Shown: piece after piece, positions 22,690 to 54,171 of the stretch
Position numbering within the stretch: the first letter of the stretch is position 1
Layout of the letters: each line of letters begins with the position of its first letter
Assembly (NCBI GenBank): GCA_002269645.1
Contig: NIVC01000157.1
Coordinates: 248,001-312,000 of the forward strand
Origin: Macrostomum lignano
Lineage: Eukaryota
Direction of reading: 5' to 3'
Length of the DNA: 64,000 bases
Made by a program: the position numbers and the translations under genes
The notes under the pieces: generated by a model
Told to the model about the DNA's origin: nothing
What the model saw: the letters and a program-made list of their open reading frames with translations, nothing else
Databases searched by the model: none

Positions 22690-22757
22690 AGAGAGACGGG
22701 ATGAGAAGGAGAGAGACGAGGGTGAGATGGAGAGATGAGGATGAGGGAGAGAGACGA

Positions 22758-22823
<66 letters not shown>

Positions 22824-24030: not shown

Positions 24031-24061
<31 letters not shown>

Positions 24062-27449: not shown

Positions 27450-27490
<41 letters not shown>

Positions 27491-28512: not shown

Positions 28513-28543
<31 letters not shown>

Positions 28544-30368: not shown

Positions 30369-31225
<857 letters not shown>

Positions 31226-31619: not shown

Positions 31620-34010
31620 AGAGTGTACATATTAGATAGGATTGTACATGTTAGATAAGTGTATTTGTTAGATAGGAGTGTACATGTTAGATAGGAGTGT
31701 ACATGTTAGATAAGAGTGTACATGTTAGATCAAAGTGTACATGTTAAAGAGTGTACTTGTTAGACAGGAGTGTACATGTTAGATAGGAGTGTACATGTCA
31801 GATAGGAGTGTACATGTCAGATAGGAGTGTACATGTTAGATAGAAGTGTACATTGAGATAAGAGTGCACATGTCAGATTGGACTGTACATGTTAGATAAA
31901 GTGTACATGTTAGATAGGAGTGTACATGTTAGATAGGAGTGTACATGTTAGATAGGAGTGTACATGTTAGATAGGAGTGTACATGTTAGATAGGAGTGTA
32001 CATGTTAAAGAGTGTACTTGTTAGACAGGAGTGTACATGTTAGATAGGAGTGTACATATTAGATAGGAGTGTACATGTTAGATAGGAGTGTACATTGAGA
32101 TAGGAGTGTACATGTTAGATAGGAGTGTTCATGTTAGATAGGAGTGTTCATGTTAGATAAGAGTGCACATGTCAGATTGGACTGTACATGTTAGATAAAG
32201 TGTACATGTTAGATAGGAGTGTACATGTTAGATAGGAGTGTACATGTTAGATAGGAGTGTACATGTTAGATAGGATTGTACATGTTAAAGAGTGTACTTG
32301 TTAGACAGGAGTGTACATGTTAGATAGGAGTGTTCATGTTAGATAAGAGTGCACATGTCAGATTGGACTGTACATGTTAGATAAAGTGTACATGTTAGAT
32401 AAGAGTGTACATGTTAGATAGGAGTGTACATATTAGATAGGAGTGTACATGTGAGATAGGAGTGTACATTGAGATAGGAGTGTACATGTTAGATAGGAGT
32501 GTTCATGTTAGATAAGAGTGTTCATGTTAGATAAGAGTGTACATGTTAGATAAGAGTTTACATGTTAGATAGGAGTGTTCATGCTAGATAGGAGTGTACA
32601 TGTTAGATAGGAGTGTAAATGTTAGATAGGAGTGTACATTGAGATAGGAGTGTACATGTTAGATAGGAGTGTATATGTTAGATAGGAGTGTACATGTTAG
32701 ATAGGAGTGTACATGTTAGATAGGAGTGTACATGTTAGATAGGAGTGTACATTGAGATAGGAGTGTAAATGTTAGATAGGAGTGTACATGTTAGATAAGA
32801 GTTTACATGTTAGATAGGAGTGTTCATGTTAGATAAGAGTGTACATGTTAGATAAGAGTGCACATGTCAGATTGGACTATACATGTTAGATAAAGTGTAC
32901 ATGTTAGATAGGAGTGTACATGTTAGATAGGAGTGTACATGTTAAAGAGTGTACTTGTTAGACAGGAGTGTACATGTTAGATAGGAGTGTTCATGTTAGA
33001 TAAGAGTGCACATGTCAGATTGGACTGTACATGTTAGATAAAGTGTACATGTTAGATAGAAGTGTACATGTCAGATTGGACTGTACATATTAGATAGGAG
33101 TGTACATGTGAGATAGGAGTGTACATTGAGATAGGAGTGTACATGTTAGATAGGAGTGTTCATGTTAGATAAGAGTGTTCATGTTAGATAGGAGTGTACA
33201 TGTTAGATAGGAGTGTACATGTTAGATAGGAGTGTACATGTTAGATAAGAGTTTACATGTTAGATAGGAGTGTTCATGTTAGATAAGAGTGTACATGTTA
33301 GATAAGAGTGCACATGTCAGATTGGACTATGCATGTTAGATAAAGTGTACATGATAGATAAGAGTGTGCATGTTAGATATGAGTGTATATGTTAGAGAGG
33401 AGTGTACATGTTAGATAAAGTGTACATGTTAGATCAAAGTGTACATGTTAGATAGGAGTGTACATATTAGATAGGAGTGTACATGTGAGATAGGAGTGTA
33501 CATTGAGATAGGAGTGTACATGTTAGATAGGAGTGTTCATGTTAGATAAGAGTGTTCATGTTAGATAAGAGTGTACATGTTAGATAAGAGTTTACATGTT
33601 AGATAGGAGTGTTCATGTTAGATAGGAGTGTACATATTAGATAGGAGTGTACATGTGAGATAGGAGTGTACATTGAGATAGGAGTGTACATGTTAGATAG
33701 GAGTGTTCATGTTAGATAAGAGTGTTCATGTTAGATAGGAGTGTACATGTTAGATAGGAGTGTACATGTTAGATAGGAGTGTACATGTTAGATAAGAGTT
33801 TACATGTTAGATAGGAGTGTTCATGTTAGATAAGAGTGTACATGTTAGATAAGAGTGCACATGTCAGATTGGACTATACATGTTAGATAAAGTGTACATG
33901 ATAGATAAGAGTGTGCATGTTAGATATGAGTGTATATGTTAGAGAGGAGTGTACATGTTAGATAGGAGTGTACATGTTGGACAAAAGTGTACATGTTAGA
34001 AACGATTTTG
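31620..34010 (+). repeat. 19-bp minisatellite (GTTAGATAGGAGTGTACAT) with higher-order variant blocks
   Basis: Read directly. Confidence 0.95.
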
Positions 34011-34477
34011 CATGTTAGACAGAATTTTTGACACATAAGAAACTCCTACGAAGGTTGTTTTTATATATATTTTTCTTAAGATGCAAATGCTATAATTATT
34101 TAAAACGATGAGAAACCTCATGAGTCATTTTACAATGTCAAAAACATTGCAGTCGGATATTTTGCCCTGCCGTCCTGTATCGAGGCAAGTCTGTTGACTT
34201 TTAGACTCAAATCTGTGCCGAGAGTCGAGAAGGCGTCTCTGCAGCCAAGATTTTTTATTGCTGTTTCCTCATCTTTCAAGGCTAATTTTAGAATTTTGGA
34301 ATAATATCCCATATCCTGTCAGGAACCAGCCCGTGGAGGAACGGGTCAGGACACGTGTAGGCGGCCACCACCAGATCCATATTTGGCCATCAGATCAAAC
34401 CAGACCTAGATCGGCAGATCCTTGATGAGGCGATTCTAAATATCCTATCGATTGCGCATTGCTGGCAAGGAGGTTCT

Positions 34478-34603: not shown

Positions 34604-35645
34604 ATGACAACTCTTGGAAAGTAAGCTGGCTTTTATTTTTTACTTTTTCACTTCGTTTTGCTCAGTTTCACCAGATTCTGCTAACCGATTTTTCACTCGG
34701 CTCTCATAAATGAGCGTTTTTGTTCGGACCTGTAGGCCCCATGACCAAGAGAAACTGTTTGCGGCATCGCTGCATTAGGGCAGCCATTCAAGAATGCCAT
34801 TGCGCTGAGTTGCCATGCAGTTTCTGTGTGGTTGCTATGCGGTTTCCATGCAGTTGCTATGCTGTTGCTATGCGGTTTCCATGCAGTTGCTATGCAGTTG
34901 CTGTGCGGTTGCTGTACCGTTACTATTCAGTTGCTATTCAGTTGCTATTCTGTTGCTATGCGGTTTCCATGCAGTTGCTATGCTGTTGCTATGCGCTTTC
35001 CATGGGGTTGCTATGTAGTTGCTATGCTTTTCCCATGCCGATGCTATATGCCATTACCATGCAATTTCTACGCGGTTAATATACAGTTACTTTTCAGTTG
35101 TAATGCGGTTGCTATGCGGTTTCCATGCTATTTCAAACTTAATCTCGAACGCATCGGTTCGCCACTCTACCCTGCTCAGGCCGCAGACAGTCCGCCTGGC
35201 CGCTCCGCTGGCTCTGCTCCTGCTGTACACCATCTGCTTCTGCGCCAAACCAACGGCCGGTCTGCCAGCTTCCGCCAGCCTGATGGAGCGCCGAGCCAGC
35301 TACTGGCCGGGCATGTGGCAGTTCGACCGAAGCGACGGCGGCGGCTACGGGGAGCGCTACTACGACTACTACGGCGGGGCCAGGTACGCCAAGCGAGGCT
35401 ACTACTGGCCGGGCATGTGGAACTTCGATCGCTACTACGACGAGAGCTCGCCACTGGAGGGCAAGCGCGCCTACTACTGGCCTGGCATGTGGCGTTACCA
35501 GCAGCGCCGGCCGTCCAAGCGGTCCTACGGCTACGGCAACGACCATCCGTACTGGCTGGGCAAAGCCTGCGGCGAGACTGGCGACCCCGCCGCCTGCAGC
35601 ATCCTGAACGGCCTGCACAACAACTATTATTACTACTATGATTGA
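34604..35645 (+). CDS. Secreted prohormone-like protein, 160 aa, with three YWPGMW repeats and a C-terminal Cys-pair peptide; exons 34604-34620 and 35180-35645
   Basis: ATG ACA ACT CTT GGA AA|GTAAGC ... CTCAG|G joins in frame to give MTTLGKPQTVRLAAPLALLLLYTICFCAKPTAG (signal-like), then RR-ASYWPGMWQFDR, KR-GYYWPGMWNFDR...G-KR-AYYWPGMWRYQQ-RR, KR-SYGYGNDHPYWLGKACGETGDPAACSIL...YYYYYD*. Codon usage is GC-rich like the other exons. Confidence 0.85.
34810..35130 (+). repeat. Degenerate GTTGCTAT-based repeat in the prohormone intron, also present at 35845-36050
   Basis: Read directly; explains the Cys/Tyr-rich ORFs 34720..35079, 34815..35018 and 35972..36157. Confidence 0.8.
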
Positions 35646-36384
35646 GCAGTTCTTGCTATCTTGGTTGGTTTCATCTTATAGACAAACCTTTTGGAGGCCG
35701 ACAAGTTCTACGTATTGTATCGTGTGTCGTTTTCTCCGAATGTCATCAACCCCACCAACACCAAACGGTTTTGTGCGTCTCTGAGCTTGGCGTTTCTATT
35801 TTAACGGCATGTTGCGGTAACAGCGAACTGTATCTGTACTGTCCCTATGCTGTTGCTATGCCGTTGCTAGGCTATTGCCACCTAGATACTATAATTAATG
35901 TATTTGTCTTACAATTTTGGCTTTTGTCACTTAGCTATTGCAGTATGTAGTAGCAGCACATACTCATACAATTGCTATGCTGTTGCTGTGCAGTTGCTAT
36001 GCAGTTGCTATGCCGTTGCTATGCTATTGCTATGCTGTTGCTATGCAGTCGATATATATCGTTTCAGTCCATCTCAGCTGTTATTTTCCCATGTTTCTTT
36101 GAAGTCAGTGCGTTATTCCCCTGCAGGTATCGAAGCGATCAGGAAGATCCGGATTGATCAGTGATCAGGAAAATTTGATCAGGACAGACTGTTTTGTTAA
36201 TCCTTAATCCTAACATTCGCGCATATTATCCTATATCACACCCTGCGAGACTGCACTACCCATGTAGACTCCTGTAATAACTGTTGAGTGTCTCATTATT
36301 CGGAAAAATATATATACCACTCCATAAAATTTGAATTGTCAAAATCCATTCATTTATTTATTTATTTATTATAAATTTAGAGCG

Positions 36385-36770
36385 AAATGTCGGAGATATG
36401 AAGTGTCGGAGATATGAAGTGTCGGAGATGTGAAGTGTCGGAGATGTGAAGTGTCGGAGATATGAAGTGTCGGAGATGTGAAGTGTCGGAGATATGAAGT
36501 GTCGGAGATGTGAAGTGTCGGAGATATGAAGTGTCGGAGATGTGAAGTGTCGGAGATATGAAGTGTCGGAGATATGAAGTGTCGGAGATGTGAAGTGTCG
36601 GAGATGTGAAGTGTCGGAGATATGAAGTATCGGAGATATGAAGTGTCGGAGATATGAAGTGTCGGAGATGTGAAGTGTCGGAGATATGAAGTGTCGGAGA
36701 TATGAAGTATCGGAGATATGAAGTGTCGGAGATATGAAGTGTCGGAGATGTGAAGTGTCGGAGATATGAA
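36385..36770 (+). repeat. 16-bp minisatellite (GAAGTGTCGGAGATAT/GT), ending in a hairpin (GATATGAAGT..ACTTCATATC, 36763-36790)
   Basis: Read directly. Confidence 0.93.
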
Positions 36771-37595
36771 GTCGCTTCTCACTTCATATCTTCGATGAGG
36801 ATAGAAAAGATGAGACCCAGACTTCAAACCTCAGTATTTTCTCAGCAATTGTGCACTGGCTGTTATGTTTATTCTGTCGTCAAAAAATAAACCTGAAGAC
36901 GCAGTTCAGAGTGAGAGACGCATGCAAACCTTGGTGTTGATAGTCAGTTGTCTATTTTTACTCATTGGGAGGCGGGGGACTGTACCCGATCGGTCGTGTA
37001 CTGATGTTTTTACAGTCGGTCTGAGAATTTTTGCCTCAAAACAAGCGCTTTTATAAGGCACCACCTGATGTCGTTTGAGACAGCAGAAAAACACAGGGAA
37101 TTCGCGTTTCAGCTTCTATTCAAAACGATGTTGACGATTTGTTTTTGCACCTGCGACCCAGCACGGGATGAAAGGCAATTATTTTGGAGTAAAAAATACC
37201 CCGGCTATCTCTGGTCCAGAAAAGTCGCACAGAGGTTGCTCAGCAGCCCTGACTTTCTCTCAATGACATGACACACATGATCTTCATCATCATGGATAGT
37301 CACGAACTCAGCGCTAAACGCCTACGACTGGAACAGTGAGAATCAGAACCCTTGAGCACGGAGGACAGCTGCTAAAACGACTCGAGTACCTCTAATGGCA
37401 GATGTTTGCAGAAAGGATTATATGCTCCTCTGGAAAGCATTTCCTTACTAATTAAGTCTAGCTGTTTCGATTGAGAGTGCCAGATGGTATTGCAGTGTTT
37501 TTGTATGTTTTTATAGCAGCCACTACGAGTATAAGCTGGCATGTAGTTGCATTGTGAATTTGACTGAATAATTTGGTTAACTTAATACTTAGGAG

Positions 37596-38333
37596 CTACA
37601 GAGGGGTGACAGCTACAGAGGGGTGACAGCTACAGAGGGGTGACAGCTACAGAGGGGTGACAGCTACAGAGGGGTGACAGCTACAGAGGGGTGACAGCTA
37701 CAGAGGGGTGACAGCTACAGAGGGGTGACAGCTACAGAGGGGTGACAGCTACAGAGGGGTGACAGCTACAGAGGGGTGACAGCTACAGAGAGGTGACAGC
37801 TACAGAGGGGTGACAGCTACAGAGGGGTGACAGCTACAGAGGGGTGACAGCTACAGAGGGGTGACAGCTACAGAGGGGTGACAGCTACAGAGGGGTGACA
37901 GCTACAGAGGGGTGACAGCTACAGAGGGATGCCAGCTACAGAGGGGTGACAGCTACAGAGGGGTGACAGCTACGGAGGGGTGACAGCTACAGAAGGACGC
38001 CAGCTACAGAGGGGTGACAGCTACAGAGGGGTGACAGCTACAGAGGGGTGACAGCTACAGAGGGGTGACAGCTGCAGAGGGGTGACAGCTACAGAGGGGT
38101 GACAGCTACAGAGGGGTGACAGCTACAGAGGGGTGACAGCTACAGAGGGGTGACAGCTACAGAGGGATGCCAGCTACAGAGGGGTGACAGCTACAGAGGG
38201 GTGACAGCTACGGAGGGGTGACAGCTACAGAAGGACGCCAGCTACAGAGGGGTGACAGCTACAGAGGGGTGACAGCTACAGAGGGGTGACAGCTGCAGAG
38301 GGGTGACAGCTGCAGAGGGGTGACAGCTACAGA
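37596..38333 (+). repeat. 17-bp minisatellite (GCTACAGAGGGGTGACA)
   Basis: Read directly. Confidence 0.95.
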
Positions 38334-38934
38334 GCAGTATGTGTAGTCATTGGTTTTGTGGCAGCGCACAGCTCATTCAATCCCAAAAAACATGTTCCAC
38401 AAGTTTGATTTTCATATCGGTCCCAACCATGCAGAGGGTCTCTCGTTCTCCGCAATCGGCCCGAGAGAAATATTTCCAATCAAACTCGCCGCAGATATTG
38501 GATGAAGCTACCAGCATTTACTACCAGCACCTCTAAAGCCGCTGCCAGTGCCTAAACCCCAGGAGGCTGCGAAGTCAGTGAATCGAAACAATCTCGTGAT
38601 GAAGACACGATTTCCTGGAATTGAGTGGCACTGGCGTGCTGCCAATCTGCTTTCAAATTCCATCATTAATGCTGACTGCTACTCCCCTCTAATCTCCATT
38701 TCTTCCCCATCTCTATAGTTTTCCCACGCGGACTTCTCCCAGAACGAACTAAAATTCCCAGAAGTTCAGAAATATTCTAAGAAAAGGATTTTCCGGTTCT
38801 GATTCTAAAATTTTCTTTTCAAGCGAAACTTCCTACTAAAAGTAGAAGCTTAGAATTGATTTTTCATTATTTTGAATCAGATAGCTCCTCGGCTGGGTCC
38901 ATTAAAGATTTTTTAAAGCAGAATGACTGACATA

Positions 38935-39215
38935 AAACTACGGGATTGCAACAATAGGACAACACAATTGCAACAATATGACAACACAATTGCAGCAATA
39001 TGACAACACGATTGCAACAGTTTGACAACACAATTGCAACAATATGACAACACAATTGCAACAATAGGACAACACAATTGCAGCAATATGACAACACGAT
39101 TGCAACAATATGACAACACAATTGCAGCAATATGACAACACGATTGCAACGATATGACAACACAGTTGCAGAAATATGACAACACAATTGCAACAATAAG
39201 ACAACACAATTGCAA
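38935..39215 (+). repeat. 22-bp repeat (ACAACACAATTGCAACAATATG)
   Basis: Read directly; explains the Cys-rich minus-strand ORFs 38867..39233. Confidence 0.9.
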
Positions 39216-39756
39216 CAATTCTGCGACTGACATTTTAGGTACTATTTAGATTGGATAAAATATTATAGATGATATTATGTAGAGATCGAGACTACATTAT
39301 TCTTTATGAATGGTTGAAGATATGTATACATGTTGCTTTGTAGAATTATCAGTCTTTGTTTTAATAATTTGAGCGTCACCAGTTCTAAGCATCGCTGACC
39401 ATTTTGGATTATGCCTGATTTTAAAGGGTTTTACCTAACGTACTAATATATATTGGATAGTAGTATAAAGTGAATGTACTCACCGAGAGTATTAACAGAC
39501 CGAAGCTTAGATAATATATAGTACATTGGATTAGCAGATCTATAGGCTTGATAGATCTATACATCGATAAGCACTAATTTTTGTACGCATCCAATTGATA
39601 ATTTCTCAAAGGAGCTAATATGAAATCCGGGTGCACCAGTTGATAACTCCACCAATTCTGGTGGATAAATTGAGTGAAAATTATTGAGTAAATAAAAACA
39701 AGTCTGATTAGAGTTTGAGAGAGTATTGAAGTTAGCATGGTTAAAATGGTCAGACT

Positions 39757-42115
39757 TCACCAGAAGTGACACTTGTCATTATCAGTCAGGTACATTGGAT
39801 CTCCCGGCTTGCATTTGAACACCCTGGCGAAGTCCTTCGACTGCATCACCTGACCGTTCACTCTGGGATGCGGAGGCGAGTGACGCTTACCCTTGAATAC
39901 AGAGATCAGGGTGTTCTTTTCCGCCTTTGTGCAGAGCAGCTGAGCATTGTGGATGAAGAACAGCTGATCCGGTGTCAGCCCCGCCAGCTTCTCTCCTGGA
40001 ATCAGCCGAGACCGCCTCCCAGACTTTGCCGCACTGCTTCTGTAGGCTCGGAATGCGGAATTGATGCCAACAATATCGGCAAAATTTTCGTCAAACTTCC
40101 GCACTCCTGCATTCATTGAATTGTCCCAAATGTCAGATTTTGCAAACTCAGGATCGATGATCTGGTTGTAGAAATCTGCCAGACATTGAGATTGCTTGTC
40201 ATACCGCAGCGCTGTGACATTGTCAAATACACCTATCTGTTCCTCTCCAACGCTAATTTTTTTATTGCCTAATTTGTCAAAGGCGTGCCCGACCTCGTGG
40301 CCGACTGTGCCGCCGATGCCTCCGTACAGCAGGCAGTCGGGGTAGCCCTTCATGTAGACTTTGGTGAGCAGCAGGCCCAGGTAGATGAAGAGCGAATTCA
40401 GGTGTAGCGAGTAATGAGCGTTGACAGTAAACATTCTTGAAAAAATGTCACTCGGCATTAAGTCCTGTTTGTCAGCTGTCAAAATCCAAAGTCGATTCTG
40501 AAGCTGAGTGCTTTTAAACTGCAAAACAACATCGCCAAATGTTCTGCTTTGGTTAACTTGAGCAGCAACGTTTGAGTAGCCTTCGGTGAACTCGGACATG
40601 TTGAACTGGGGGTAGCCGACGGTGCTCCGAATGGCGTCGAGCTTCTTCTTAATTGCTGCCTTACTCGGCTGCTCAATCCACGCCTCGCTGTCCACATTCT
40701 CCCACATGGCCTCCTTGATGTCGCCGATTACCACTTTCACTGAGTTGAAGTCGTCTGTGACGAAGGCGCTGCTGAACATCTGCAAAGCCACTGGCGGCAT
40801 GGAGCCCAGCATCATGTCCATGCACAGTCTTGAGCTGTTCCGGCCTTCTTTCTCATGAATGAGATACTTTTGTTGCCCGAAAAGGTTTTTAAAGAATTTG
40901 AACGATTCGTCTGGAAGAAAATTGACTGCCGACAGTGCAGAGTCCAGGAGAATAAAGTCGTAGTACGGTCCCTGTCTGTGCTCCAGCTCCGTTGTGAGCT
41001 GCTCGAGTACAAAAAATAATAGCGGGTACCTAATAATCTTGACTCTCATTGAGGGAGGTAACTTATTGGCTGAATACTTGCTCACAGCGCTGTAAAACTC
41101 CGTCCAGTTAAAGTTGAGATTTTCTGCCTCAAACTGAGTAAAATTCTGCAGCTGTTCCAGATGGTAAGGACCAACTTTCAAATACGATTCGCCTTTGTTT
41201 AACATTTGCTGAACTGCAGGCTTTATCTGATTTATACTAACAGTCAAATTCAGGTCTATGAGATCACTGAAATCTTCTAATGCAGAAATTCCGTCATTGA
41301 AAACCTTATTCCAGGATTTCAGGGTAAATAGGTAGTATGGTGACGAGTGCAATCTCAGACTCCGCTCCACCGAGCCTGGCGACAATCTGAACAGATCCGA
41401 TGTACCGGATATCACCAGTCTCGCTAGGAAGTCTTCGATGCCTGAGTAGCCCTCTAGAAAGTCCAACAAAGGTCTCACTAATGATTTCATGTCGAAAGGT
41501 CGTTCTCCAGTCTGCCAGCTGTTCGGGAGAAATTCCTCTTTCTTAGAATTCAGAACGCTGGAGCCGCGCCAATCCATGCAGGTCCCGTAGATGGATCGCA
41601 GAGTCTGGAACAGCTGCGCTTCGCTTGCGTCTCTGGGCTTGGACAAGTTCTTGAAGTACATCATCTCAAATAGATTTCCTTGAATGGAGTTGTCCTCCTG
41701 TAGTACTGAGCCCACGGTCTCGGCGGTGAAGGGGTGGCTTTTATGGAAACCGCCGCAGGCGAAGCTGTAGAAGTCTTGGCATGGGTCCGCAGATCGGTCG
41801 ATGTGGCTCTGCAGCAGTGCGCTTGCACTTATGCAGGCCTCGCTGGTGCACAGGCTGGGATGCTTGGGAGTGGCTGCTCCAGGTGGTAACCGAGCTGTGC
41901 TGAGAGCGTAGAGCAGAACGAAAACTAGAAGCAGAATTGACAGAACCGCAATCAGCAAGAGCATAAGCAGGCGTCTTGCTCGATCCAGTCGAGTTGAAAA
42001 CTCAACTCTGCCGCCATCGAGAATGCTCTGTTGGCAATGCAGCGATTTGAGGGTGGGGTTAATCCAGTTTGACTGTCTGACAGATGGAATTTCCCAATGA
42101 AAATGTTCTTACCAT
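39757..42115 (-). CDS. M13 (neprilysin/ECE-like) zinc metallopeptidase, type II membrane protein, about 757 aa; exons 42115-42113 (ATG only) and 42027-39757
   Basis: 735-aa ORF with TM anchor LLLIAVLSILLLVFVLLYAL, C-x4-C and DPCQDFYSFACG, VNAHY, GHEVGHAFD (HExxH), DENFADIVG (third Zn ligand), HSPPHPRVNG and terminal F.C.PGDPM...KCHFW. ATG|GTAAGA at 42115 and CAACAG| at 42028 give an 85-bp phase-0 intron adding the cytoplasmic tail MSILDGGRVEFSTRLDRARRLL. Confidence 0.93.
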
Positions 42116-42769
42116 TGAAGTTGCCGCACTGCTACCAGCAGACATCATTGCGAGATGAAGTTATTGTAGGCTATTTTTGTTAAACCAACTGCTCTCTTCT
42201 CTACAAACGTTGATAAGCTAATCCGAATTTATAGGCAATCCGTAACTCAAAACACTTTGTAGCAAAGACTTTATATGCTTTATAAATCTTGCTTTAGATT
42301 AAATTACAATTCTCTTTTGCGCAGAAAATGCAGAGGTGCAAAATTTCTTATTCTAACATGCATTAGTCGGCATTCAACCATTTTATAAGCTAGGTTGCAT
42401 TTTTATACCGCTATAGGGACCAATTCAGCATTACTGAATGTATTGAAGATTTAAATTTAAGGTTTAAATTTGCTTTTTGCGCAGATGAGAAGTTTTAAGC
42501 TGCAAAGAGCAGCAGCTCAAAAGTTCCAGATTCTTTTGAAAGTCATTTATTAGTGATTTTTTTCTATCGAGACCCGAAATTGGAAAAATAATTTTGTGAA
42601 GGATGAAAATTCTTGTTACTGTAATTTTTACATTAATTCCCTAAAAATTTACTGGATTTATTGCACCACATTCACATATGAGAGTTTCTGAAGATGTGAG
42701 AATCGATTCTTGTCAGTTTTGTATCAATACTACTTAAATATTACAATGCACACTTCAACAACTAGAGCC

Positions 42770-43378
42770 ACCTCCCCTGTCCCTGCCCTCTCTTTCTCTC
42801 TCCATCTCACTCCCCCTCTCTCCCTCTCACTCCCCCTCTCTCCCTCTCACTCCCCCTCCCTCCCTCTCACTCCCCCTCTCTCCCTCTCACTCCCCCTCTC
42901 TCCCTCTCACTCCCCCTCTCTCCCTCTCACTCCCCTCTCTCCATCTCACTCCCCCTCTCTCCCTCTCACTCCCCTCTCTCCCTCTCACTCCCCCCCTCCC
43001 TCTCACTCCCCTCTCTCCCTCTCTCTCCCCCTCTCTCCCTCTCACTCCCCCTCTCTCCCTCTCACTCCCTCTCACTCCCTCTCACTCCCCCTCTCTCCCT
43101 CTCACTCCCTCTCACTCCCTCTCACTCCCTCTCACTCCCTCTCACTCCTCTCACTCCCTCTCTCCCTCTCGCTTTCCCTCTCTCCCTCTCACTCCCCCTC
43201 TCTCCCTCTCACTCCCTTCCACTCTCCCTCTCTCCCTCTCACTCCCTCTCACTCCCTCTCACTCCCTCTCACTCCCCTCTCTCCCTCTCACTCCCCCTCT
43301 CTCCCTCTCACTCCCTTCCACTCTCCCTCTCTCCCTCTCACTCCCTCTCACTCCCTCTCTCTCCCCTCTCTCCCTCTC
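42770..43378 (+). repeat. CT-rich compound satellite (CTCCCTCTCACTCCCCTCT)
   Basis: Read directly. Confidence 0.93.
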
Positions 43379-43690
43379 ATGCGGAGCACTTCATATGTGA
43401 ATGCCCCGCCCTTGCTCACCTACCTCGGCCCAAACCCGGACCTCTCCGACGTTTTCAGGCCCCAGAATCTCTGCCAGCTCGTCCGCTACCTAAGGGCTAC
43501 CGGGAGAGCGACCATCCACCGGATCTCCCTGCTGGACACCGCAGCACCACCTGCCCGTGGTCGCTAGGGGTTAGCGAAATGGGCGGCAACGCCTCCTCGA
43601 TCCATCCGGATGCACGGAGTCCCCTGCAGTTGAGTCAAACAAGTCAACAAGCGCCACGGGTCAGTCCGCATCCAGCGACGATTTGCGACC
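43378..43690 (+). mobile_element. 3' end of a non-LTR retrotransposon ORF2 (I/R1/Loa-like) plus 3' UTR, severely 5'-truncated
   Basis: [11 protein letters not shown] (end of the C-terminal CCHC knuckle), then (frameshift) [12 protein letters not shown]...[10 protein letters not shown], the characteristic terminal motif of these ORF2s. Confidence 0.65.
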
Positions 43691-45685
43691 TAGATCTTGG
43701 GATAGTTTACTAGAGTGGAAGAATCCTGTTCAGCCTTCAGTCTCCTTCAGCTCAACCGATTTCAATTGAAGCTGAAACCCAACCTGTCCAATGCCCCGCC
43801 GTCAACGCAGCCCACGGCAACCTGCTCAGCAGACTCAACGTTCCACCTGTACCACTATCTTCATCCTCCAGTTCCGAGCCGCAAGCGCCTCTCCTCCTCG
43901 TTGCAGCGACAACCGTCTTCTCCCCAAGCCAGTCTTCTGAGTTCTACACTAAGGGATTAAAAAAGGGTTTTATTAGAAAATTTTGAGGCCCCTCACCAAC
44001 TCCGAATTCGTCATCACATGAAGCTAATTGTCACGCACAATTTGTGATCCTAACTCCATTCTCTAAGAGCGCGTACGAAAAATCACCCCATAAACTTGTA
44101 CGGCCTAACAACCTTGTTATTCCGAAATTAGGCTTAAAAAGGACTCCTATAAGTTTCTAACCGCTTCAACTCATCTAGACGACCGCAAAAATCGCAAAAT
44201 TGAATTTGTCTCAGATTCCCTTCCACTTTATCATGCATCGTCATTCTTACTAGGAGTAGAGATACGGTAGATATAGATTGTCGAATTCATTTTTCACCCG
44301 GATTTGCACCGATTTTTGGTTGCGTACCGGAAAGCAGCATCGATCAGTTTTAAAAAATCAAGTCAAGTTAGAATTACTTTTGTAAGGAATAATCATAAAT
44401 GATTTTGAATCAAATAGGACTGGCAAAAGGGTAAGATTTGCCGAAAGTTTCGAAAGGTCCTCTTAGGTATAAGAATTGTCAACTAGCTTTTAATTAATCT
44501 TCATTTTTGTTTAAATTTATTGGCACTCTGACCATTCTCGTGCCACTATAGAAGTTTACACCAAATTGAATCCTTAATGGGATATCAGCAAAGGCTGTGC
44601 GTCACTCGTTTTTCACCTTTTAAAGTACGTCCTTGTCCTCGCACGAGTTTTGATGAGCATCTTTTGAATAACATATAGTAATCACCCTTTCCTTTTATGG
44701 GTTTGTTCTTTAATTTAGCAAAGTGTTTTTCATTACTTTTATTAAGCAAAATTGCACAGGATTACACAGCGGGCGACTACACAGACCGTCCGTCGGTAAT
44801 CCGCTCGAATCTTCTTGGATTAAAAGAAAAAAATCCAGCCTATTAGGATTATTAATTTTTCTAGACACTTTACTCGCGCGCTTGGCTACAAAGGTGGGTA
44901 GCATTTCATAACATTTTTTCCAAGCTCTTTGTCGTTTCGTGTTTAAATTCGATATCGAAATAGCTAAAGAATAGCCAACGAACAATGCGAACCATAAACT
45001 CAGATGGATAGATGAATACACCAGGCGAATACTTCAAATGAATGAGCAGGCCGATGCAACAGTCGGTAACATCATGAACCGCGGAGTGTACAGCGGTCCT
45101 GACTTTCTAATCGTCAGGCATGTACACTCTGTGTGCCTCGGGGGTTTGGACCTATGGGGCGTGAATCGTACGACAACCCATTTTCCTGCACACAAGCCGC
45201 AAATGATTGTAAAATTAAATTAAAAAAATACACAAGCGGACAGTTACATCGGAAAAGTCGAGTTCACTACACGAATCAAACCAGAGTAATAAGATCGAAT
45301 GCACAAAACAGAAAAAGCGGACGAAGATACACGAACTTAATTATCTTGAACATATAATACACAAAAATATTACTTGATTACAAATAAATATGCAATGTCA
45401 AAAAATTGAAAATACAACAAATTGCAATCGGTTTTAGCTCGTACTATTATTAACATATTGATAAAACTTCGCTGTCGCATATCCGCTCAGTTACAGAAAA
45501 ATCACATGCAGGGTCTGCACATGCAGTCTGCACATCAATTCAAGTTTGATGAGAGCTGGGTGCGTACGACCGAAGATCCATCGAACAAGAAGTTAAACAC
45601 AGGGAAAAATTGGATATTTCCTTACTAAACTGTGGCATAAACAGGTACTAAATTCAACAGACAAGAGGCTTAGGGAAGTCACGTT

Positions 45686-45760
45686 GGGGCCGTAACCCAG
45701 TGGTCTGGCGCGGCGATCTGATGTTCCAGCGGCCCAGGCTCGATTCCAAGTGCAGTCACA
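45686..45760 (+). mobile_element. tRNA-derived SINE head or tRNA pseudogene
   Basis: A-box-like TAACCCAGTGG (45693-45703) and B-box-like GGCTCGATTCC (45737-45747) at tRNA spacing; no intact cloverleaf. Confidence 0.4.
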
Positions 45761-46006
45761 TTAATTCGGGGCTGAATCGGAATCTCAGCCTGGCTCTGCT
45801 CGTGCAGTTATCGCCCTTGAGGGCCAACCCCCAAGGGTCAATGTCGCTTTAAGTGACCCTGACTTCAGGACACTTGCCTGCGACATGCAACTCATTAAGA
45901 TCCTTGTTGGAATATCGTGAACAATGGATACAACAGCCATATTATTGAAGTAAATTTTGGAAATATAGTTCCTCTCCAACACGTGGAACGATGGTCTTGA
46001 CAATGT

Positions 46007-47496
46007 TCACCGCATCCGGCAGTTCAGACAGCAGCGCCGCAGCTGCGACTTGAAATGAGGAATCGATAGCGAATAGATGACGAAATTCGCTACAGAATCG
46101 GCCGTGGTCAGCACGTTGGCGACGCCCATGAACATGTTGATGCCCGGCCATTCTAGATCTTTAATCGCCCCAGCAACCAGCAGAGGCAGCTCACAGATGA
46201 CAAAGGCCGAGCAGAGTACCAGGACCGTGCGGTTCACCGACCTGACGAAAAGCAGACAGCGGTTTCAAAATTCTTAACTACGTCAGATGAGTAACAGAAT
46301 GAAAGTGAATTTTAGAGTGTTGGTTTCTCTGTCAAATGTCAAATGTCAGATGTCAGATGTCAGATGTCAGATGTCAGATGTCAGAGAGTGTACATCCATG
46401 ACGATTGGAAAGTCAGGGTCGCTGTACACCCTATGTGAGCGTGTGTACAGTGTGTATTCAGGAGTTAGCGAAAAGGACAGAAGTGTCGTCAACCAGCCAG
46501 ATTTTACACCTACTTCTGGCCCAACAACGGAGAATAGTAGTCGACAGGTAAACCGCCAGTTCTGAAAAGTCGTTTCAATCTTATAACCAAATTTTGCGCT
46601 TACCCAGCCTGCGCCTCTCGCTGCCGTCTCAGTCTGACGAAGAACGGAGCCGGGACATTCCTTAACAGCTGGCGGTCCGCCCGCTTCAGCTGGTACAGGG
46701 TGAGGCAGCTGACTACGAGAAGACAGAACACTGGGAGCAGCGAGTGCAGCGCAAAGAAGCACCTGGGGTAGATCCAGTAGGCAGCGGATGTGGCAAATGG
46801 GGCGGCCTTGATCGCTACAATCTTCTGAGTAGCCGGGCACATGGTGTACCTCACCTCCAGCGCCCGGGGCAGAGTCACCAGCAGCGACAGCCCAGCCAGA
46901 AGGCCGGATGCCTGGTTCACCGACCGGCTCGGCGGCGGGGACGTCATGAGGGTGCGTCCGCTGACGGCGCGCCACCTTCGCCAGGCGATGTGCACGATGA
47001 GCCAGTTGCGGGTCAGCGAGCTGGCCTTGTACACCAGCCAGAGCGGGTAGAGCATCAGCTTAGACAGCCAGCCGGGACCCGACGGGAGCCGGTGGCCGGC
47101 AGGCGGCGCGGTCAGCAGGTAGTACAGCTCGAACAGCAGCGCCGACAGACTGAGGACCACCTCGCAACCGGTGAGGTGCAGCAGCATCTGGGACAGGGCG
47201 CTGCAGGTGCATAAGTTACCTGTAGTTTCGTTACTAATCGAGTGGTTTAAGCTGCTGTTGCTGTGCCGGACATTTCTCTGGCGGTAGTGCCGATACCAGA
47301 ACACGTAGAAGGACGCAGCGGAGACGACCAAAGCCAGCAGTGCCAGCCCTGCTTTGAACAGGTACAGCACGTCCGTGGCAGTCTGTTCGGGATTGGATCC
47401 GAACCAAAACACCATCCTTGATGGCAATTCAAGATTTGAGCAGTTCTCAGCGAACCACAAGTCGCTGTCAGCTTCTACTTCCGTTGGAGTAGTCAT
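46007..47496 (-). CDS. Rhodopsin-family (class A) GPCR, FMRFamide/peptide-receptor-like orphan, 375 aa; exons 47496-46604 and 46241-46007
   Basis: Seven hydrophobic segments; TM3 YP...RNWLIVHIAWRRWRAV (DRY variant), TM4 LPRALE, TM5 SLLP, TM6 FVICELP, TM7 SVANFVIY, helix 8 FKSQLRRCC. GG|GTAAGC...TTTCGTCAG|G phase-2 intron keeps the frame. Confidence 0.9.
46331..46385 (+). repeat. 7-bp repeat (GTCAGAT/GTCAAAT) in the GPCR intron
   Basis: Read directly. Confidence 0.85.
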
Positions 47497-47879
47497 GTTG
47501 CCTGTGTTAGGTGAAGATTGGTTTTGGTCTGTGCCGAAAACACTCCTTCTGACGGTGGTTTCATGTTTCTAGGATTTCTATGCTAGTTAAGTCATTTCCC
47601 CAAAAAGCTGATTGGGTAGCGATAAGACACCCAATCTCCTAGGAAGCTGCTTTTGAAAGCTTTTCAACATTTTTTCAAACCCCTTCGATGGTAAAATGTT
47701 TTGCTAATGTATCGAGAAAACATTGACCTTCATTAACTAGCCGGAAAAAATTCACAAAATTTACTTGATTGCACACTCGGAAGTAATTACTCGTACTAAG
47801 GATTAAGACTAATGGGTTTCCTGCTGCATCTGTAACATGAAGACATTCCCATTTAACACACAGGTGACACTCATGGCTA

Positions 47880-48475
47880 ACACACATATGACACTGCTGT
47901 CTAACAGGTGACACTCCTGTCTAACAGGTAAGACTCCTGTCTAACAGGTGACACTCCTGTCTAACAGGTAAGACTCCTGTCTAACAGGTGACACTCCTGT
48001 CTAACAGGTGACACTCCTGTATAACAGGCGACACTCCTGTCTAACAGATGACACTCCTGTCTAACAGGTGACACTCCTGTCTAACAGGTGACACTCATGT
48101 CTAACACACAGGTGACACTCATGTCTAACACACATGTGATATTCATGTCTAACACACAGGTGACACTGCTGTCTAACAGGTGACACTCCTGTCTAACAGG
48201 TGACACTCCTGTCTAACAGGTGACACTCCTGTCTAACAGGTGACACTCCTGTCTAACAGGTGACACTCCTGTCTAACAGGTGACACTCCTGTCTAACAGG
48301 TGACACTCCTGTCTAACAGGTGACACTCCTGTCTAACAGGTGACACTCCTGTCTAACACACAGGTGACACTCATGTCTAACAGGTGACACTCCTGTCTAA
48401 CAGGTGACACTCCTGTCTAACACACAGGTGACACTCATGTCTAACAGGTGACACTCCTGTCTAACAGGTGACATC
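47880..48475 (+). repeat. 20-bp minisatellite (GACACTCCTGTCTAACAGGT)
   Basis: Read directly; its reverse complement resembles the 19-bp array at 31620. Confidence 0.93.
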
Positions 48476-49069
48476 CCTAGCAGGCACAGCAAAGCGAAGC
48501 AAAGACCTAATTTGAGCTCAGAGCATTTCACAATTTACTTATTTCTAATCTTGAACTCCCTCTAGCTGTGGGATTAAAGCTGAAACTGCACTAATTACTG
48601 CCAGCACTGTCATTGTCTTGACACAATTCGCTAATTGCAACATTTTCTTGTCCAATTTGAAAGTAAAGTCCATAAAAAGAAGGCATGCAAAGGCAGTTAC
48701 AACAGTGATCTACATTATTGGATAGATCGAATTCTATTCCCTAAATTTTCCCTAAGTAGCCAAAATTTCGATAATTCATCTGGAGAGTTCATGCTGGGAA
48801 TTTTATAACCTCGATATCGCTAACTGATATTCCAGAAGTATTCTTGGGTGAGAAATTTTGGTCAGGGAAATAATTTTACATCTTTTATTTCTAATTACTA
48901 GCAGTGAGCGGATGGCTCGCTTAGGTATTAATAAGTCCCGTACAATGTCACTAATTTCGATAGTAATTAGGGTATACTATAGTAGACATGTCCTGTCAAT
49001 GTTCATCAAGTCTAAAATTTCGACTCCTGTCGAATTTAAATCTTGTCGTGCGACGCCAGCAAAAAGTCA

Positions 49070-49215
49070 CTGTACTGTGGAAGCGCCATAGTGAAGGCGC
49101 CATCCAGGGGCGCCATACTGGAGGCGCCATCGTAAAATTGCCATTGTGGAGGCGCCATCAAAAAGCGCCATTGTGGAGGCGCCATAGTGAAGGTGCCATC
49201 CTGGGGCGCCATTGT
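49070..49215 (+). repeat. Short array of GGCGCCAT cores with variable 4-8-nt linkers
   Basis: About 10 cores read directly. Confidence 0.7.
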
Positions 49216-49574
49216 GAAAGCTTTGGTTATATCCGGTTGCAAGTTCGCAGGAGTGAGGCAGAATTAAAGTGGGAGACTGGGAGAGGTTTGGGGCTATCAG
49301 GGTTCAAATGCGCAATGCATCAGAATGAAGTTATGGCTGCAGAACAAGCCGACCCCAACAGTGTGTGTGCCAGCTTCCATACGCCTATAGTTAAACAATA
49401 TCTTCTGTTTATGGCCCAGCGTCAGAACTTCATCCCATGCGGAATCGAAGCTTCAGTTGCCTTTCTAAACTCTGTGCAGCTATCGGTGCACTGTTTTCCT
49501 AACTGTTATTTAGCGTTGTTAGGGCTTTGGGATGCACTGCACTACTCTGCATTGAACAGATGCAGAGACAGGAT

Positions 49575-50732
49575 CTTGTCAGTGTCACACAGGGTCAATT
49601 CTTAGTGTCACACTGGGATCTTGTCATGTCACACTGGGATCTTGTCATGTCACACTGGGATCTTGTTAGTGTCACACTGGGAACTTGTCATGTCACACTG
49701 GGATCTTGTCATGTCACACTGGGATCTTGTTAGTGTCACACTGGGTCATTAGTGTCACACTGGGTCATTAGTGTCACACTGGGTCAATTCTTAGTGTCAC
49801 ACTGGGAACTTGTCAGTGTCACACTGGGAACTTGTCAGTGTCACACTGGGAACTTGTCAGTGTCACACTGGGTCATTAGTGTCACACTGGGTCATTAGTG
49901 TCACACTGGGTCATTAGTGTCACACTGGGTCATTAGTGTCACACTGGGTCATTAGTGTCACACTGGGTCATTAGTGTCACACTGGGTCATTAGTGTCACA
50001 CTGGGTCATTAGTGTCACACTGGGTCATTAGTGTCACACTGGGTCATTAGTGTCACACAGGGTCAATTCTTAGTGTCACACTGGGAACTTGTCAGTGTCA
50101 CACTGGGTCATTAGTGTCACACTGGGTCATTAGTGTCACACTGGGTCATTAGTGTCACACTGGGTCATTAGTGTCACACTGGGTCATTAGTGTCACACTG
50201 GGTCATTAGTATCACACTGGGTCATTAGTGTCACACTGGGTCATTAGTGTCACACTGGGTCATTAGTGTCACACTGGGTCATTAGTGTCACACTGGGTCA
50301 TTAGTGTCACACTGGATCATTAGTGTCACACTGGGTCATTAGTGTCACACTGGGTCATTAGTGTCACACTGGGTCATTAGTGTCACACTGGGTCATTAGT
50401 GTCACACTGGGTCATTAGTGTCACACTGGGTCATTAGTGTCACACTGGGTCATTAGTGTCACACTGGGATCTTGTCAGTGTCACACTGGGATCTTGTCAC
50501 TGCCTCACTGGGATCTTATCAGTGTCACACTGGGATCTTGTCAGTGTCACACTGGGATCTTGTCAGTGTCACACTGGGATCTTGTCAGTGTCACACTGGG
50601 ATCTTGTCAGTGTCACACTGGGATCTTGTCAGTGTCACACTGGGATCTTGTCAGTGTCACACTGGGATCTTGTCACTGCCTCACTGGGATCTTGTCAGTG
50701 CCTCACTGGGATCTTGTCAGTGTCACACTGGC
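49575..50732 (+). repeat. 19/22-bp compound minisatellite (GTGTCACACTGGGTCATTA / CAGTGTCACACTGGGATCTTGT)
   Basis: Read directly. Confidence 0.95.
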
Positions 50733-51139
50733 TCACTGAACTGTATCTTGTCAATTCCCATCTACGTATCTGGTGAATATTTCAGGAGTTTCATTATTGG
50801 GAAAATAATGATAGCCTAATGAAAAATAATTATCTTTTGATGAAACTTTCATTTAGATTAGCTGGCGTGCGACATGCAGGTAAACAAGTCGAGACCTGAC
50901 TTAAGGCTTGAATTATTCATTTTTTGACGCATTGATTGAACTCCTGCAGGTAAGGGTATTCGATGCTTGAGCAGAATCATAGATTCAAAGCTGAGTTCTC
51001 TTGGGACACTTGAAACAGCATAATTCATATTGATTCCGCCAGCTTGTAAGCTTGAGCTTCTTTGTCAGACTACTGATATAGCCTACTACTAGTAGTGCGC
51101 AAGGATTCACATTCAAGTTGTTTGTACTGTCCTGCCTGC

Positions 51140-52065
51140 ATGCTTATCACTCATTCCGCATCACTCTTATCTGTCACTCAATCATTCCGCCACTCTATCC
51201 TTGTGTCACTCTATCATTGTGTCACTATCATTGTGTCACTCTATCATTGTGTCACTCTATCATAGTGTCACTCTATCATTGTGTCACTCTATCCTTGTGT
51301 CACTCTATCATTGTGTCACTCTATCATTGTGTCACTCTATCCTTGTGTCACTCTATCATTGTGTCACTCTATCATAGTGTCACTCTATCATTGTGTCACT
51401 ATCATTGTGTCACTCTATCATTGTGTCACTTTATCATGCTGTTACTCTATCATTGTGTCACTCTATCATGCTGTCACTCTATCATTCTGTCACTCAATCA
51501 TTCTGTCACTCTGTCATTCCGTCACTCTATCCTTGTGTCACTCTATCATTGTGTCACTCTATCATTGTGTCACTATCATTGTGTCACTTTATCATGCTGT
51601 CACTCTATCATTGTGTCACTCTATCATTGTGTCACTCTATCATTGTGTCACTATCATTGTGTCACTTTATCATGCTGTCACTCTATCATTGTGTCACTCT
51701 ATCATTGTGTCACTTTATCATGCTGTCACTCTATCATTGTGTCACTCTATCATTGTGTCACTCTATCCTTGTGTCACTTTATCATGCTGTCACTCTATCA
51801 TTCCGTCACTCTATCATTCCGTCACTCTATCCTTGTGTCACTCTATCATTGTGTCACTATCATTGTGTCACTCTATCATTGTGTCAATCTGTCATTGTGT
51901 CACTCTATCATTGTGTCAATCTGTCATTGTGTCACTCTATCATTCTGTCACTCAATCATTGTGTCACTTTATCATGCTGTCACTCTATCATTGTGTCACT
52001 TTATCATGCTGTCACTCTATCATTGTGTCACTCTATCATTTTGTCACTCTGTCATTCTGTCACTG
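51140..52065 (+). repeat. 16-bp minisatellite (GTCACTCTATCATTGT)
   Basis: Read directly; explains ORFs 51118..52124. Confidence 0.93.
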
Positions 52066-52319
52066 GGAATTTTCATTCCAGTGAGCTGAGGTGGGCCTGT
52101 GTGATTTCTCACATTCCAAAGTGATCCGCCGTCAGGAAATCCGATATGCTGCTGAGGCCTCGGCTATCTTTGGTCTCGACTAACCAAAGCAGATTTTAGG
52201 ACAGTGAGTCGATGGACTGAGCTATATTATAGGACGGAATGACCTGAGAATGGTGTAAACACATCCTGCTGTTGCTGCCTCTGTAGCATATTGATTTTGG
52301 AGGAAGCGCTTTGTCTAGT

Positions 52320-53272
52320 TGAGTCACTGGATGATGGAGTTACTGAATGATTGATTCACTGAATGATTGAGTCACTAAAAGATTGAATCACTATATGATT
52401 AGGTAACTGAATTATTGAGTCTCTAGATGATTGAGTCACTGAATGATTAAGTCACTGAATGATTGAGTCACTGAATGATTGAGTCACTTCATGATTGAGT
52501 CACTTCATGATTGAGTCACTGAATGATTAAGTCACTGAATGATTGATTCACTGAATGATTGATTCACTGAATGATTGAGTCACTGAATGATTGAGTCACT
52601 GAATGATTGGAATGATTGAGTCACTGAATGATTGGAATGATTGAGTCACTGAATGATTGATTCACTGATTTATTGAGTCACTGAATGATTAATTCACTGA
52701 ATGATTGATTCACTGAATGATTAAGTCACTGAATGATTAAGTCACTGAATGATTAAGTCACTGAATGATTAAGTCACTGAATGATTAGGTCACTGAATGA
52801 TTGATTCACTGAATGATTGAGTCACTGAATGATTGATTCACTGAATGATTGATTCACTGAATGATTGAGTCACTGAATGATTGATTCACTGAATGATTGA
52901 GTCACTGAATGATTGAGTCACTGAATGATTGATTCACTGAATGATTGAGTCACTGAATGATTGAGTCACTGAATGATTGAGTCACTGATTTATTGATTCA
53001 CTGAATGATTGAGTCACTGAATGATTGATTCACTGAATGATTAAGTCACTGAATGATTGAGTCACTGAATGATTGAGTCACTGAATGATTGATTCACTGA
53101 ATGATTGAGTCACTGAATGATTGATTCATTGATTGATTGAGTCACTGAATGATTGAGTCACTGAATGATTAATTCACTGAATGATTGAGTCACTGAATGA
53201 TTGATTTACTGAATGATTGAGTCTCTAGATAATTGAGTCACTAAATGATTGAGTCACTGAATGATTGAGTCA
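52320..53272 (+). repeat. 16-bp minisatellite (TGAGTCACTGAATGAT) upstream of the RFamide gene
   Basis: Read directly; many units contain TGAGTCA. Confidence 0.93.
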
Positions 53273-53615
53273 CAAGATGGTTTTGCGGCTGAGGAACTGT
53301 GTAACTGAGTAAGTGAATGAGCGACTGAGTGACTTCCGCGGACCGATCAAGAGACCACAATGCTGCATGAGACCTTCCTGCATGAGACCAGCAGCTGGAG
53401 GGCCTCCCCAGTAGAGTTGCTGGTGTCGCATTTTGATTCGCTGTCCCGTGCCTTCCTTAATCCGCTGTCATCATCAGATCCACTGCAAATTTTCGGAGGC
53501 TGAATCGTCTATTTAGGAGGCCGACCTGAGATGCAGCAGGTCTTCGCCCGCCGCGCTGAACCGAGAAAAATCGAAATCTACTTGAGAAACCTACAGATAA
53601 AGTACTGAAGCCGAC

Positions 53616-53666
53616 ATGACGCTACGAATCTTCTGCCTGCAGGTCAGTTATTTAGTTTGTTTGTTT

Positions 53667-53747
<81 letters not shown>

Positions 53748-54171
53748 CTAGCCAGTTAGTTAGTTAGGTTGGTCACTGTGTGCTGTTTCGCCCCTGCCGG
53801 GTCTTCAGGTACTTCTGGTGAGCCTGGTGGCACTGTCGATGATGGCTCCATCGCATTGCTCACGCGTCGACGAGCTGGAAGAAGACCAATCTGGAATCCG
53901 CCTGATCAGACCGCGGCATGCTTCGCTTGACAAGCTGGAGCGGAGTCTGTACCGCCTGCTGCTGACTTCGCCGGAGCATCGGAAACAAGGTGGAGCCGCC
54001 ACCGCCGCCGCCGCCAAGCAGCTCGCGGCCGCTCTGGCAGCTGAGGAGCCCGGAGAAGACGTGGTTCGAATTCGGTGAGGTTTTTATGACGAATTACAAG
54101 TATATTCGAGACGTTTGAAAAAACTAAATCACCAATTTATAACAAAACTGGTTACTTTCAGATTCGGCTGA
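53616..54171 (+). CDS. RFamide neuropeptide precursor (NPY/NPF- or sNPF/PrRP-superfamily-like), 100 aa; exons 53616-53642, 53809-54074 and 54162-54171
   Basis: Spliced product MTLRIFCLQ|VLLVSLVALSMMAPSHC-SRVDELEE...EHRK-QGGAATAAAAKQLAAALAAEEPGEDVVRIR|FG*: signal peptide, RK site, terminal RF-G amidation signal. Introns are GT-AG, phases 0 and 2; AATAAA at 54233. Confidence 0.85.
53660..53765 (+). repeat. (GTTA)n microsatellite in intron 1 of the RFamide gene
   Basis: Read directly. Confidence 0.9.

Follow-up and report, generated by a model that had tools for sequence, protein, structure and literature searches.

In the genome of Macrostomum lignano, a free-living flatworm whose whole genome was duplicated recently (PMC5704211, PMC10733133), we have analyzed a stretch of 64,000 nucleotides, hereafter the window (contig NIVC01000157.1 of assembly GCA_002269645.1, positions 248,001 to 312,000 of the forward strand). 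Our subject is an interval of about 20 kb in it, at window positions 34604-54171, which holds four genes that we label in order as G1, a precursor of peptides with the core YWPGMW; G2, a peptidase of the M13 family; G3, a G protein-coupled receptor (GPCR); and G4, a precursor ending in RIRF-Gly. A previous reading of this DNA, made from the sequence only, had suggested that ligand, receptor and terminator may here form a linked module. The genes are real; as for their adjacency, we lean toward a coincidental neighborhood of four independently acting members of the peptide-signaling toolkit, as opposed to a dedicated module.

Four genes among satellite arrays

The sequence-only reading had placed four genes in this order within about 20 kb, and this is borne out by spliced models in which all introns are canonical GT-AG, by the identity of the G1 product to an annotated protein (P0002), by the Pfam and PDB matches of the M13 gene, and by a seven-transmembrane model for G3. 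It had also called the biochemical classes correctly (a secreted precursor with dibasic cleavage sites, an M13 ectopeptidase, a GPCR and an RFamide precursor), with which the Pfam and PDB searches, the splice models, the family alignment and the predicted fold agree. The genes lie where it had put them, with small corrections of exon boundaries; the start codon of G2 is at 42148, not 42115.

The genes are read from strands +, -, -, + in order, and spacers of satellite DNA, 4-6 kb long, keep them apart. The segment from 30 to 56 kb has 12 tandem arrays, most of them minisatellites with a period of 10-22 bp, that fill most of the intergenic space. Since the window is eukaryotic with short introns, a bacterial-style listing of its open reading frames (ORFs) served as a guide only, and the long ORFs that fall inside tandem arrays are repeat artifacts. 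Inspection of ORFs and repeats in the window reveals no further convincing gene between G1 and G4, and an Rfam search of the window reports no RNA family. The interval is gene-poor and satellite-rich. An operon, or any other single transcription unit for G1-G4, can be rejected because of the mixed orientations and the satellite-filled spacers. The array load is very heavy in 22000-34100 and in the spacers up to 53300, with array lengths that differ between homeologous copies, and it includes a TCTA microsatellite of 216 units, a 19-bp array of 129 units, and GA-rich arrays at 23-29 kb.

The same order of G1-G4 is found on contigs NIVC01000471.1 and NIVC01000513.1, that is, in three genome copies in all. 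The synonymous divergence (pS) of the M13 gene between the copies is only 4-5%, and the arrangements on contigs 471 and 513 are recent whole-genome-duplication copies of this one.

Two peptide precursors and a membrane peptidase

G1 has two exons on the + strand. Translation starts in exon 1 (34604-34620), which also encodes the first part of the signal peptide. The signal peptide continues into exon 2 (35180-35645), which, as translated and split at the dibasic sites, goes on to three YWPGMW peptides and then to a tail rich in Tyr that has two Cys. The spliced product of 160 aa is identical to P0002 (hypothetical protein BOX15_Mlig013514g1), in a region where the window coincides with our locus extract L004 (NIVC01000157.1:272604-293645 of the same assembly, 100% identical to window 24604-45645). 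Behind the N-terminal signal peptide, three peptides begin directly after RR or KR: ASYWPGMWQF...RYA, GYYWPGMWNFDRYYDESSPLEG, and AYYWPGMWRYQQ, each starting one or two residues ahead of the YWPGMW core. A homologue search with G1 finds one further protein, the M. lignano paralogue P0003 (39% identity), which after its own signal peptide has at least four identical 14-mer units, KR-GYYWPGMWNFRNAD. The first 10 residues of the repeat unit, GYYWPGMWNF, are the same in G1 and P0003.

The two other genome copies of G1 have 2 and 3 codon changes with respect to the window copy, all of them synonymous. At the 4-5% neutral divergence seen in the M13 gene, a G1 free of constraint should have gathered about 15 replacement changes, and 0 are observed. 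Thus, the G1 protein is constrained.

A multi-copy precursor is recognized by a signal peptide followed by related repeats between dibasic convertase sites, and both are present in G1. By this sequence evidence, G1 encodes a putative secreted precursor of YWPGMW peptides. It resembles the multi-copy neuropeptide precursors of the pedal-peptide/orcokinin type and of the FMRFamide type in its signal peptide and in its repeats bounded by KR or RR, and P0003 resembles them even in having identical tandem copies, the classic layout of a multi-copy prohormone. G1 differs from them in that its peptides mostly have no Gly amide donor, and in that homologues are detected only in M. lignano. Prohormone convertases would cut G1 at RR/KR into three peptides, either non-amidated or Glu-amidated, and the predicted products include GYYWPGMWNFDRYYDESSPLE(-amide), AYYWPGMWRYQQ, and the ASYWPGMWQF...RYA peptide. 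We found no mention of the motif (searched as WPGMW) or of the BOX15 gene identifiers in the literature searched, the planarian prohormone tables contain no PGMW, YWPG, or RIRFG peptide, and to our knowledge the core matches no peptide family. The YWPGMW family, so far seen only in M. lignano, is among the new findings of this analysis.

G4, the precursor at the other end of the interval, has three exons on the + strand. Exon 1 (53616-53642) encodes MTLRIFCLQ, the start of the signal peptide, in agreement with the protein P0001; exon 2 (53809-54074) completes the signal peptide and adds the propeptide and the greater part of the C-terminal peptide; and exon 3 (54162-54171) is the short A TTC GGC TGA, which supplies the last base of an Arg codon, Phe, the Gly that serves as amide donor, and the stop. 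The product of 100 aa, which ends in VVRIRFG-stop, is 98% identical to the annotated BOX15_Mlig021140g2. The call of G4 as an amidated RFamide precursor in the sequence-only reading agrees with this ending, and the identity of G4 can be refined to one like neuropeptide F (NPF). The last two bases of exon 2 are the CG of the final Arg codon, such that the last intron interrupts, between bases 2 and 3, the Arg codon before Phe (ATT CG, gtgagg...tttcag, A TTC GGC TGA). In NPY/NPF genes an intron at precisely this point is conserved as a hallmark, from vertebrates to flatworms (PMC7314547, PMC2953531), and R-X-R-F(Y)-amide is given as the C-terminus of NPF (PMC6389622). With two introns and about 300 coding positions, we estimate at <1% the chance that the position of the intron in G4 is a coincidence.

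Thus, the position and phase of this intron together with the RXRF-Gly end lead us to read G4 as a divergent gene of the NPF type and not as FMRFamide-like, an identity that we have set aside on account of the Arg-codon intron. With the NPY/NPF genes (Schmidtea mediterranea npy-1 to npy-11, Moniezia expansa npf), G4 shares the signal peptide, the C-terminal R-X-R-[F/Y] followed by the Gly donor (here R-X-R-F-Gly), and the intron. It departs from them in length, the Gly being separated from the signal peptide by about 73 residues instead of the usual peptide of 36-40 residues, and in that the stop directly follows the Gly. Moreover, it has neither the GRPRF/Y end nor the conserved pattern of Tyr and Pro of planarian NPYs such as Smed-NPY-1, -8, -10, and -11: there is no GRPR, and there are 0 Tyr in the last 31 residues. 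Judging from sequence, G4 may be a highly divergent NPF-like gene recognizable only by its intron position. It would yield a C-terminally amidated ...VVRIRFamide of the NPF kind, and this peptide would act on a receptor of the NPY/NPF type encoded elsewhere.

The sole dibasic site of G4 (RK, in ...EHRKQGG...) is RQ in both other genome copies, which makes the length of the mature peptide uncertain. A second replacement among the copies, Ser to Arg, also falls outside the C-terminal 31 residues, and those 31 are invariant.

G2 is on the - strand and consists of a main exon (39757-42027) that encodes the transmembrane anchor and the ectodomain, and of a first exon (42113-42148), read from the sequence, with the start of the cytoplasmic tail, MMSAGSSAATSM. 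An ORF of 735 aa had marked the gene; it grows by 21 in-frame 5' codons of the same exon and by the 12 codons of the first exon, resulting in a spliced coding sequence of 2307 nt for 768 aa, which is also the annotated length of the contig 471 product. In Pfam, G2 matches Peptidase_M13 (E-value 8.8e-39, 133.7 bits, for a cut-off of 24.5) and Peptidase_M13_N (1.6e-21, 77.7 bits, cut-off 32). In a PDB search the matches span 1e-42 to 1e-40, and ECE-1 (1.3e-42) and neprilysin (7e-42) score equally, such that the subfamilies are not separated.

The motifs HEVGH (HExxH), ENFADIVG (ENxADxxG), VNAHY, HSPPHPR and a terminal CHFW-stop (CxxW) are all kept in G2; of these, HExxH and the ExxxD within ENxADxxG are the zinc-binding and catalytic motifs of neprilysin. 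By eye, the topology is of type II, with a tail of 33 residues and then the hydrophobic stretch LLLIAVLSILLLVFVLLYAL. G2 is in all of this like neprilysin and endothelin-converting enzyme (MEROPS M13), which have the type-II anchor, both Pfam M13 domains, and HExxH, ENxAD, NAxY, H...R, and CxxW. The ratio of replacement to synonymous divergence (pN/pS) of G2 relative to the other genome copies is 0.25-0.27, which indicates purifying selection. Thus G2 has, by its predicted protein, all the marks of an intact, catalytically complete and membrane-anchored M13 ectopeptidase. M13 enzymes are generally broad in specificity, and G2 would act as a broad-specificity peptidase at the cell surface.

The annotation of the window's own contig misses this gene (window 39757-42148, corresponding to L004 15124-17545), which is called on contig 471 with 768 aa and on contig 513 with 597 aa. 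The M13 copy on contig 513 (locus L005) has lost 1 nt from a CCCC run that lies shortly upstream of HExxH, at the equivalent of window position ~40342, and this explains the truncated annotation of 597 aa. The deletion probably marks a homopolymer error of long reads and not a pseudogene.

An unannotated orphan receptor

G3 is on the - strand (46007-47496), with two exons and one intron (46242-46603). Exon 1 (46604-47496) extends from the N-terminus to intracellular loop 3 and includes transmembrane helices (TM) 1 to 5, a model for which we have the ORF, the splice sites, the relatives, AlphaFold, and Foldseek. Exon 2 (46007-46241), for which we have the same evidence and a family alignment with conserved C-E-x-P and N-F-x-I-Y, includes TM6 with CELP, TM7 with NFVIY, and helix 8. 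The product has 375 aa. There is no gene model for G3 in any of the three genome copies, and no match to itself in the protein collections searched. In the two other copies the gene lies at L001 1122-2669 and at L002 2622-4171, intact and with two exons in both cases.

By itself, the G3 sequence has no match in Pfam at E<=0.1 (7tm_1 and Srw included), no match in PDB even at E<=10, and no match in a word-indexed database of 5.8 billion proteins. An exhaustive HMMER search reports 33 relatives at E<=0.001, at the top of which is the M. lignano paralogue P0004 (43% identity). Ten of the relatives were looked up, and the four that come with a species name are all from flatworms, namely the monogeneans Protopolystoma and Cichlidogyrus, and M. 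lignano. In the resulting family alignment, 28 of 33 sequences match Pfam 7tm_1, and 9 match Srw, with a best E-value of 1e-18.

The AlphaFold model of G3 from the single sequence is poor (predicted local distance difference test, pLDDT, 46), and we report the model that uses the 33-sequence alignment (pLDDT 85.4; predicted template modeling score, pTM, 0.87), in which, besides seven helices and helix 8, extracellular loop 2 (ECL2) forms a beta-hairpin. A Foldseek comparison of this model with the PDB gives 920 matches at E<=0.001, the best of them to orexin, somatostatin, neurotensin, galanin, opioid, and neuromedin-U receptors. Profiles of the G3 family also place peptide receptors first, and NPY receptors are absent from their best 60 matches. 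Because a narrower profile mixes histamine H2, rhodopsin, adenosine A2a, and beta-1 adrenergic receptors among the peptide receptors, peptide-type is to be taken for G3 as a lean and not as a demonstration. The sequence-only reading had called this GPCR peptide-receptor-like, a description with which the best Foldseek matches agree and that the interleaved non-peptide receptors soften.

The modeled fold is that of class A, with seven helices and helix 8 that superpose on solved class-A receptors. The canonical micro-switches are another matter: G3 has Ser for N1.50, Glu for D2.50, R-R-W for DRY, C-E-L-P for CWxP, and N-F-V-I-Y for NPxxY. The variants at D2.50, DRY, CWxP, and NPxxY are family-wide. 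The family has motifs of its own: RNW and IAW-R-R-[YW] stand where DRY would be, CE-x-P where CWxP would be, and NF-x-IY where NPxxY would be, and PR-x-FE precedes the ECL2 Cys. From alignment and predicted fold together, G3 is best described as a divergent class-A GPCR. It would be one member of a large expansion of flatworm orphan rhodopsins, and its ligand would probably be a peptide.

G3 resembles the flatworm-restricted orphan families (PROF1/Srfb, Srfa/c, Srw-like, Rho-L/R) in that its named relatives are from flatworms only and it has no significant direct match to known receptors. Some S. mediterranea rhodopsins have, as G3 does, RNW(I/L) in TM3, ELP in TM6, and NFVIY in TM7. PROF1 is defined by [LI][AS]..[DE] in TM2, D[RK][CM] in TM3, [NS][FG]..[YF] in TM7, and by the absence of introns. 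G3 fits in TM7 (NFVIY) and nearly in TM2 (LTGCE, with LS..E in relatives), a likeness to PROF1-I in NF..Y and L[ST]..E; on the other hand, its TM3 ends in W-R-R-[YW] (RRW/RRY, as opposed to D[RK][CM]), and it has one intron. For these two reasons we reject membership of G3 in PROF1.

The G3 exons, intron, and 5' flank (window ~46000-47850) are 99.4-100% identical among the three copies, when other flanks differ by 4-18% and the synonymous sites of M13 by 4-5%. This suggests a local gene-conversion tract or a very recent homogenization. Only 1-3 coding differences separate the copies of G3, and the ratio of nonsynonymous to synonymous rates (dN/dS) is uninformative.

Linked module or neighboring genes

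The component classes for a unit of ligand, receptor, and terminator are all present in this interval, and we have found no evidence that ties them functionally. If the adjacency is coincidental, as we lean to think, then the interval would be a 20-kb island of genes between minisatellite arrays, and an ordinary stretch of the M. lignano genome. The alternative that started this work is a true linked module, in which G3 is the receptor for the RIRFamide or the YWPGMW peptides, the M13 enzyme terminates the signal, and selection or shared regulation maintains the linkage. We regard it as quite improbable, and several observations speak for it all the same. Every component is present and intact, and the solved structures closest to G3 are peptide receptors. 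In addition, 9 of the 33 sequences in the G3 family alignment match Srw, and srw is the C. elegans chemoreceptor subfamily whose similarity to FMRFamide receptors is recognizable (PMC4862687). G3 and G4 are transcribed divergently and might have regulatory DNA in common, a point that weighs against our preferred reading. So does the plausibility of a peptide ligand for G3, given the ECL2 beta-hairpin of the model and the peptide receptors as its best structural neighbors. Finally, the order of the four genes is kept in 3 of 3 copies, and four such consecutive genes would be a rare combination under naive independence, with an expectation <1e-3. This is a rough figure of our own and not a computed test; it assumes that prohormones are ~0.2-0.3% of genes, GPCRs ~2%, and M13 <0.1%, and refers to the 51 prohormone genes and 566 GPCRs of planarians. 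It is also hard to weigh properly, because the theme was picked with the genes already in view.

Against the module stands, to begin with, the recency of the duplicates: at a pS of 4-5%, the retention of linkage in three copies carries no information about selection. There are no M13, YWPGMW, or RxR[FY]G genes near the paralogue P0004 (locus L006), or near three more distant relatives of G3 (L007-L009), which are on short contigs or are non-orthologues. No transcript-based gene model of G3 exists in any copy, and M13 enzymes are, as said, of generally broad specificity. The presence of a GPCR as a neighbor is less remarkable given that orphan receptors of the Srf/w type are about one third (199 of 566) of planarian GPCRs (PMC4862687). 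Moreover, the NPF-type structure of G4 points to an NPYR-type receptor. The one deorphanized planarian NPY receptor in our comparison is NPYR-1, which is activated by NPY-8 and was found via the vertebrate-like Rho-C cluster since NPY receptors are conserved across animals (PMC4862687). NPYR-1 comes from among canonical receptors and G3 is divergent, without direct similarity to solved receptors, and this is mild evidence against pairing G3 with the RIRFamide. The stricter form of the proposal, a selected cluster with a flatworm-specific G3 as cognate receptor of the RIRFamide or YWPGMW peptide and the M13 enzyme as its dedicated inactivator, we find highly improbable.

Doubts about single components also bear on how the neighborhood is read. 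G1 could be a secreted structural or gland product rich in Tyr and Gly (eggshell, adhesive, or cross-linking) instead of a peptide precursor, in which case the signaling theme would be reduced to three genes. Its composition of 14% Tyr and 12% Gly keeps this alternative live, if weaker, and so do the YYYYYD in the tail, the GYG and YGYG stretches in the protein, the absence of any family in a Pfam search, the motif unmentioned in the literature searched, and the label 'Salivary secreted protein' that its paralogue has in one source. Yet each YWPGMW core is 2 residues past a dibasic site, the KR-separated 14-mers of P0003 have the layout of a prohormone, and the paralogues share GYYWPGMWNF, with no amino-acid change in three copies against some 15 for a neutral sequence. 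We consider a structural G1 unlikely. A silent or decaying G3 is less likely than that, and is to be given little credence. What favors decay is that G3 is unannotated in all three copies and absent from the protein sets searched; that N1.50 (Ser), DRY (RRW), CWxP (CELP), and NPxxY (NFVIY) are lost; and that recent constraint cannot be shown for exons that are conserved no better than the intron and 5' flank. Against it, both exons are open with canonical splice sites in the three copies, the fold is predicted with confidence, and RNW, IAW-R-R, PR-x-FE, CE-x-P, and NF-x-IY are common to relatives at 21-41% identity, which implies long-term constraint. This long-term retention of family motifs argues that G3 is a real gene, and we record it as an unannotated, intact GPCR gene in three copies.

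The wider window and what the locus offers

Outside the interval, the window contains an exon with a C2 domain (1497-1916, +; Pfam C2, 5e-05) of a gene that continues past the left end, and which by eye we take to be ferlin-like; remnants of an LTR-retrotransposon pol over several ORFs (7344-9653, -), with reverse transcriptase, RNase H, and an integrase zinc-binding domain; and an ORF at 26147-26458 (-) that contains VYVGETANSIRGRMLAYIGDIRH and has no Pfam match at E<=0.001. This last one may resemble the GIY-YIG-type endonuclease motif of Penelope-like elements. To the right of G4 there is a Kelch-repeat gene (~56600-61000, -), KLHDC2/KLHL20-like and annotated as 417 aa in other genome copies, the introns of which hold minisatellites of a 21-bp type and a long GCTCCA-type array at 58.6-59.9 kb.

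The concrete gains at present are the unannotated GPCR, the M13 gene missed on this contig, the YWPGMW family, and the divergent NPF-like gene, with the main interest in the YWPGMW peptides and in the GPCR. If the module were true, it would be a rare animal case of physically linked genes for a ligand, its receptor, and its terminator. If G3 were indeed paired with one of these peptides, a flatworm-restricted clade of receptors would be deorphanized. And a functional linkage, should there be one, would shorten the way to deorphanizing one of the large flatworm-specific clades of GPCRs, which are of interest as anthelmintic targets.

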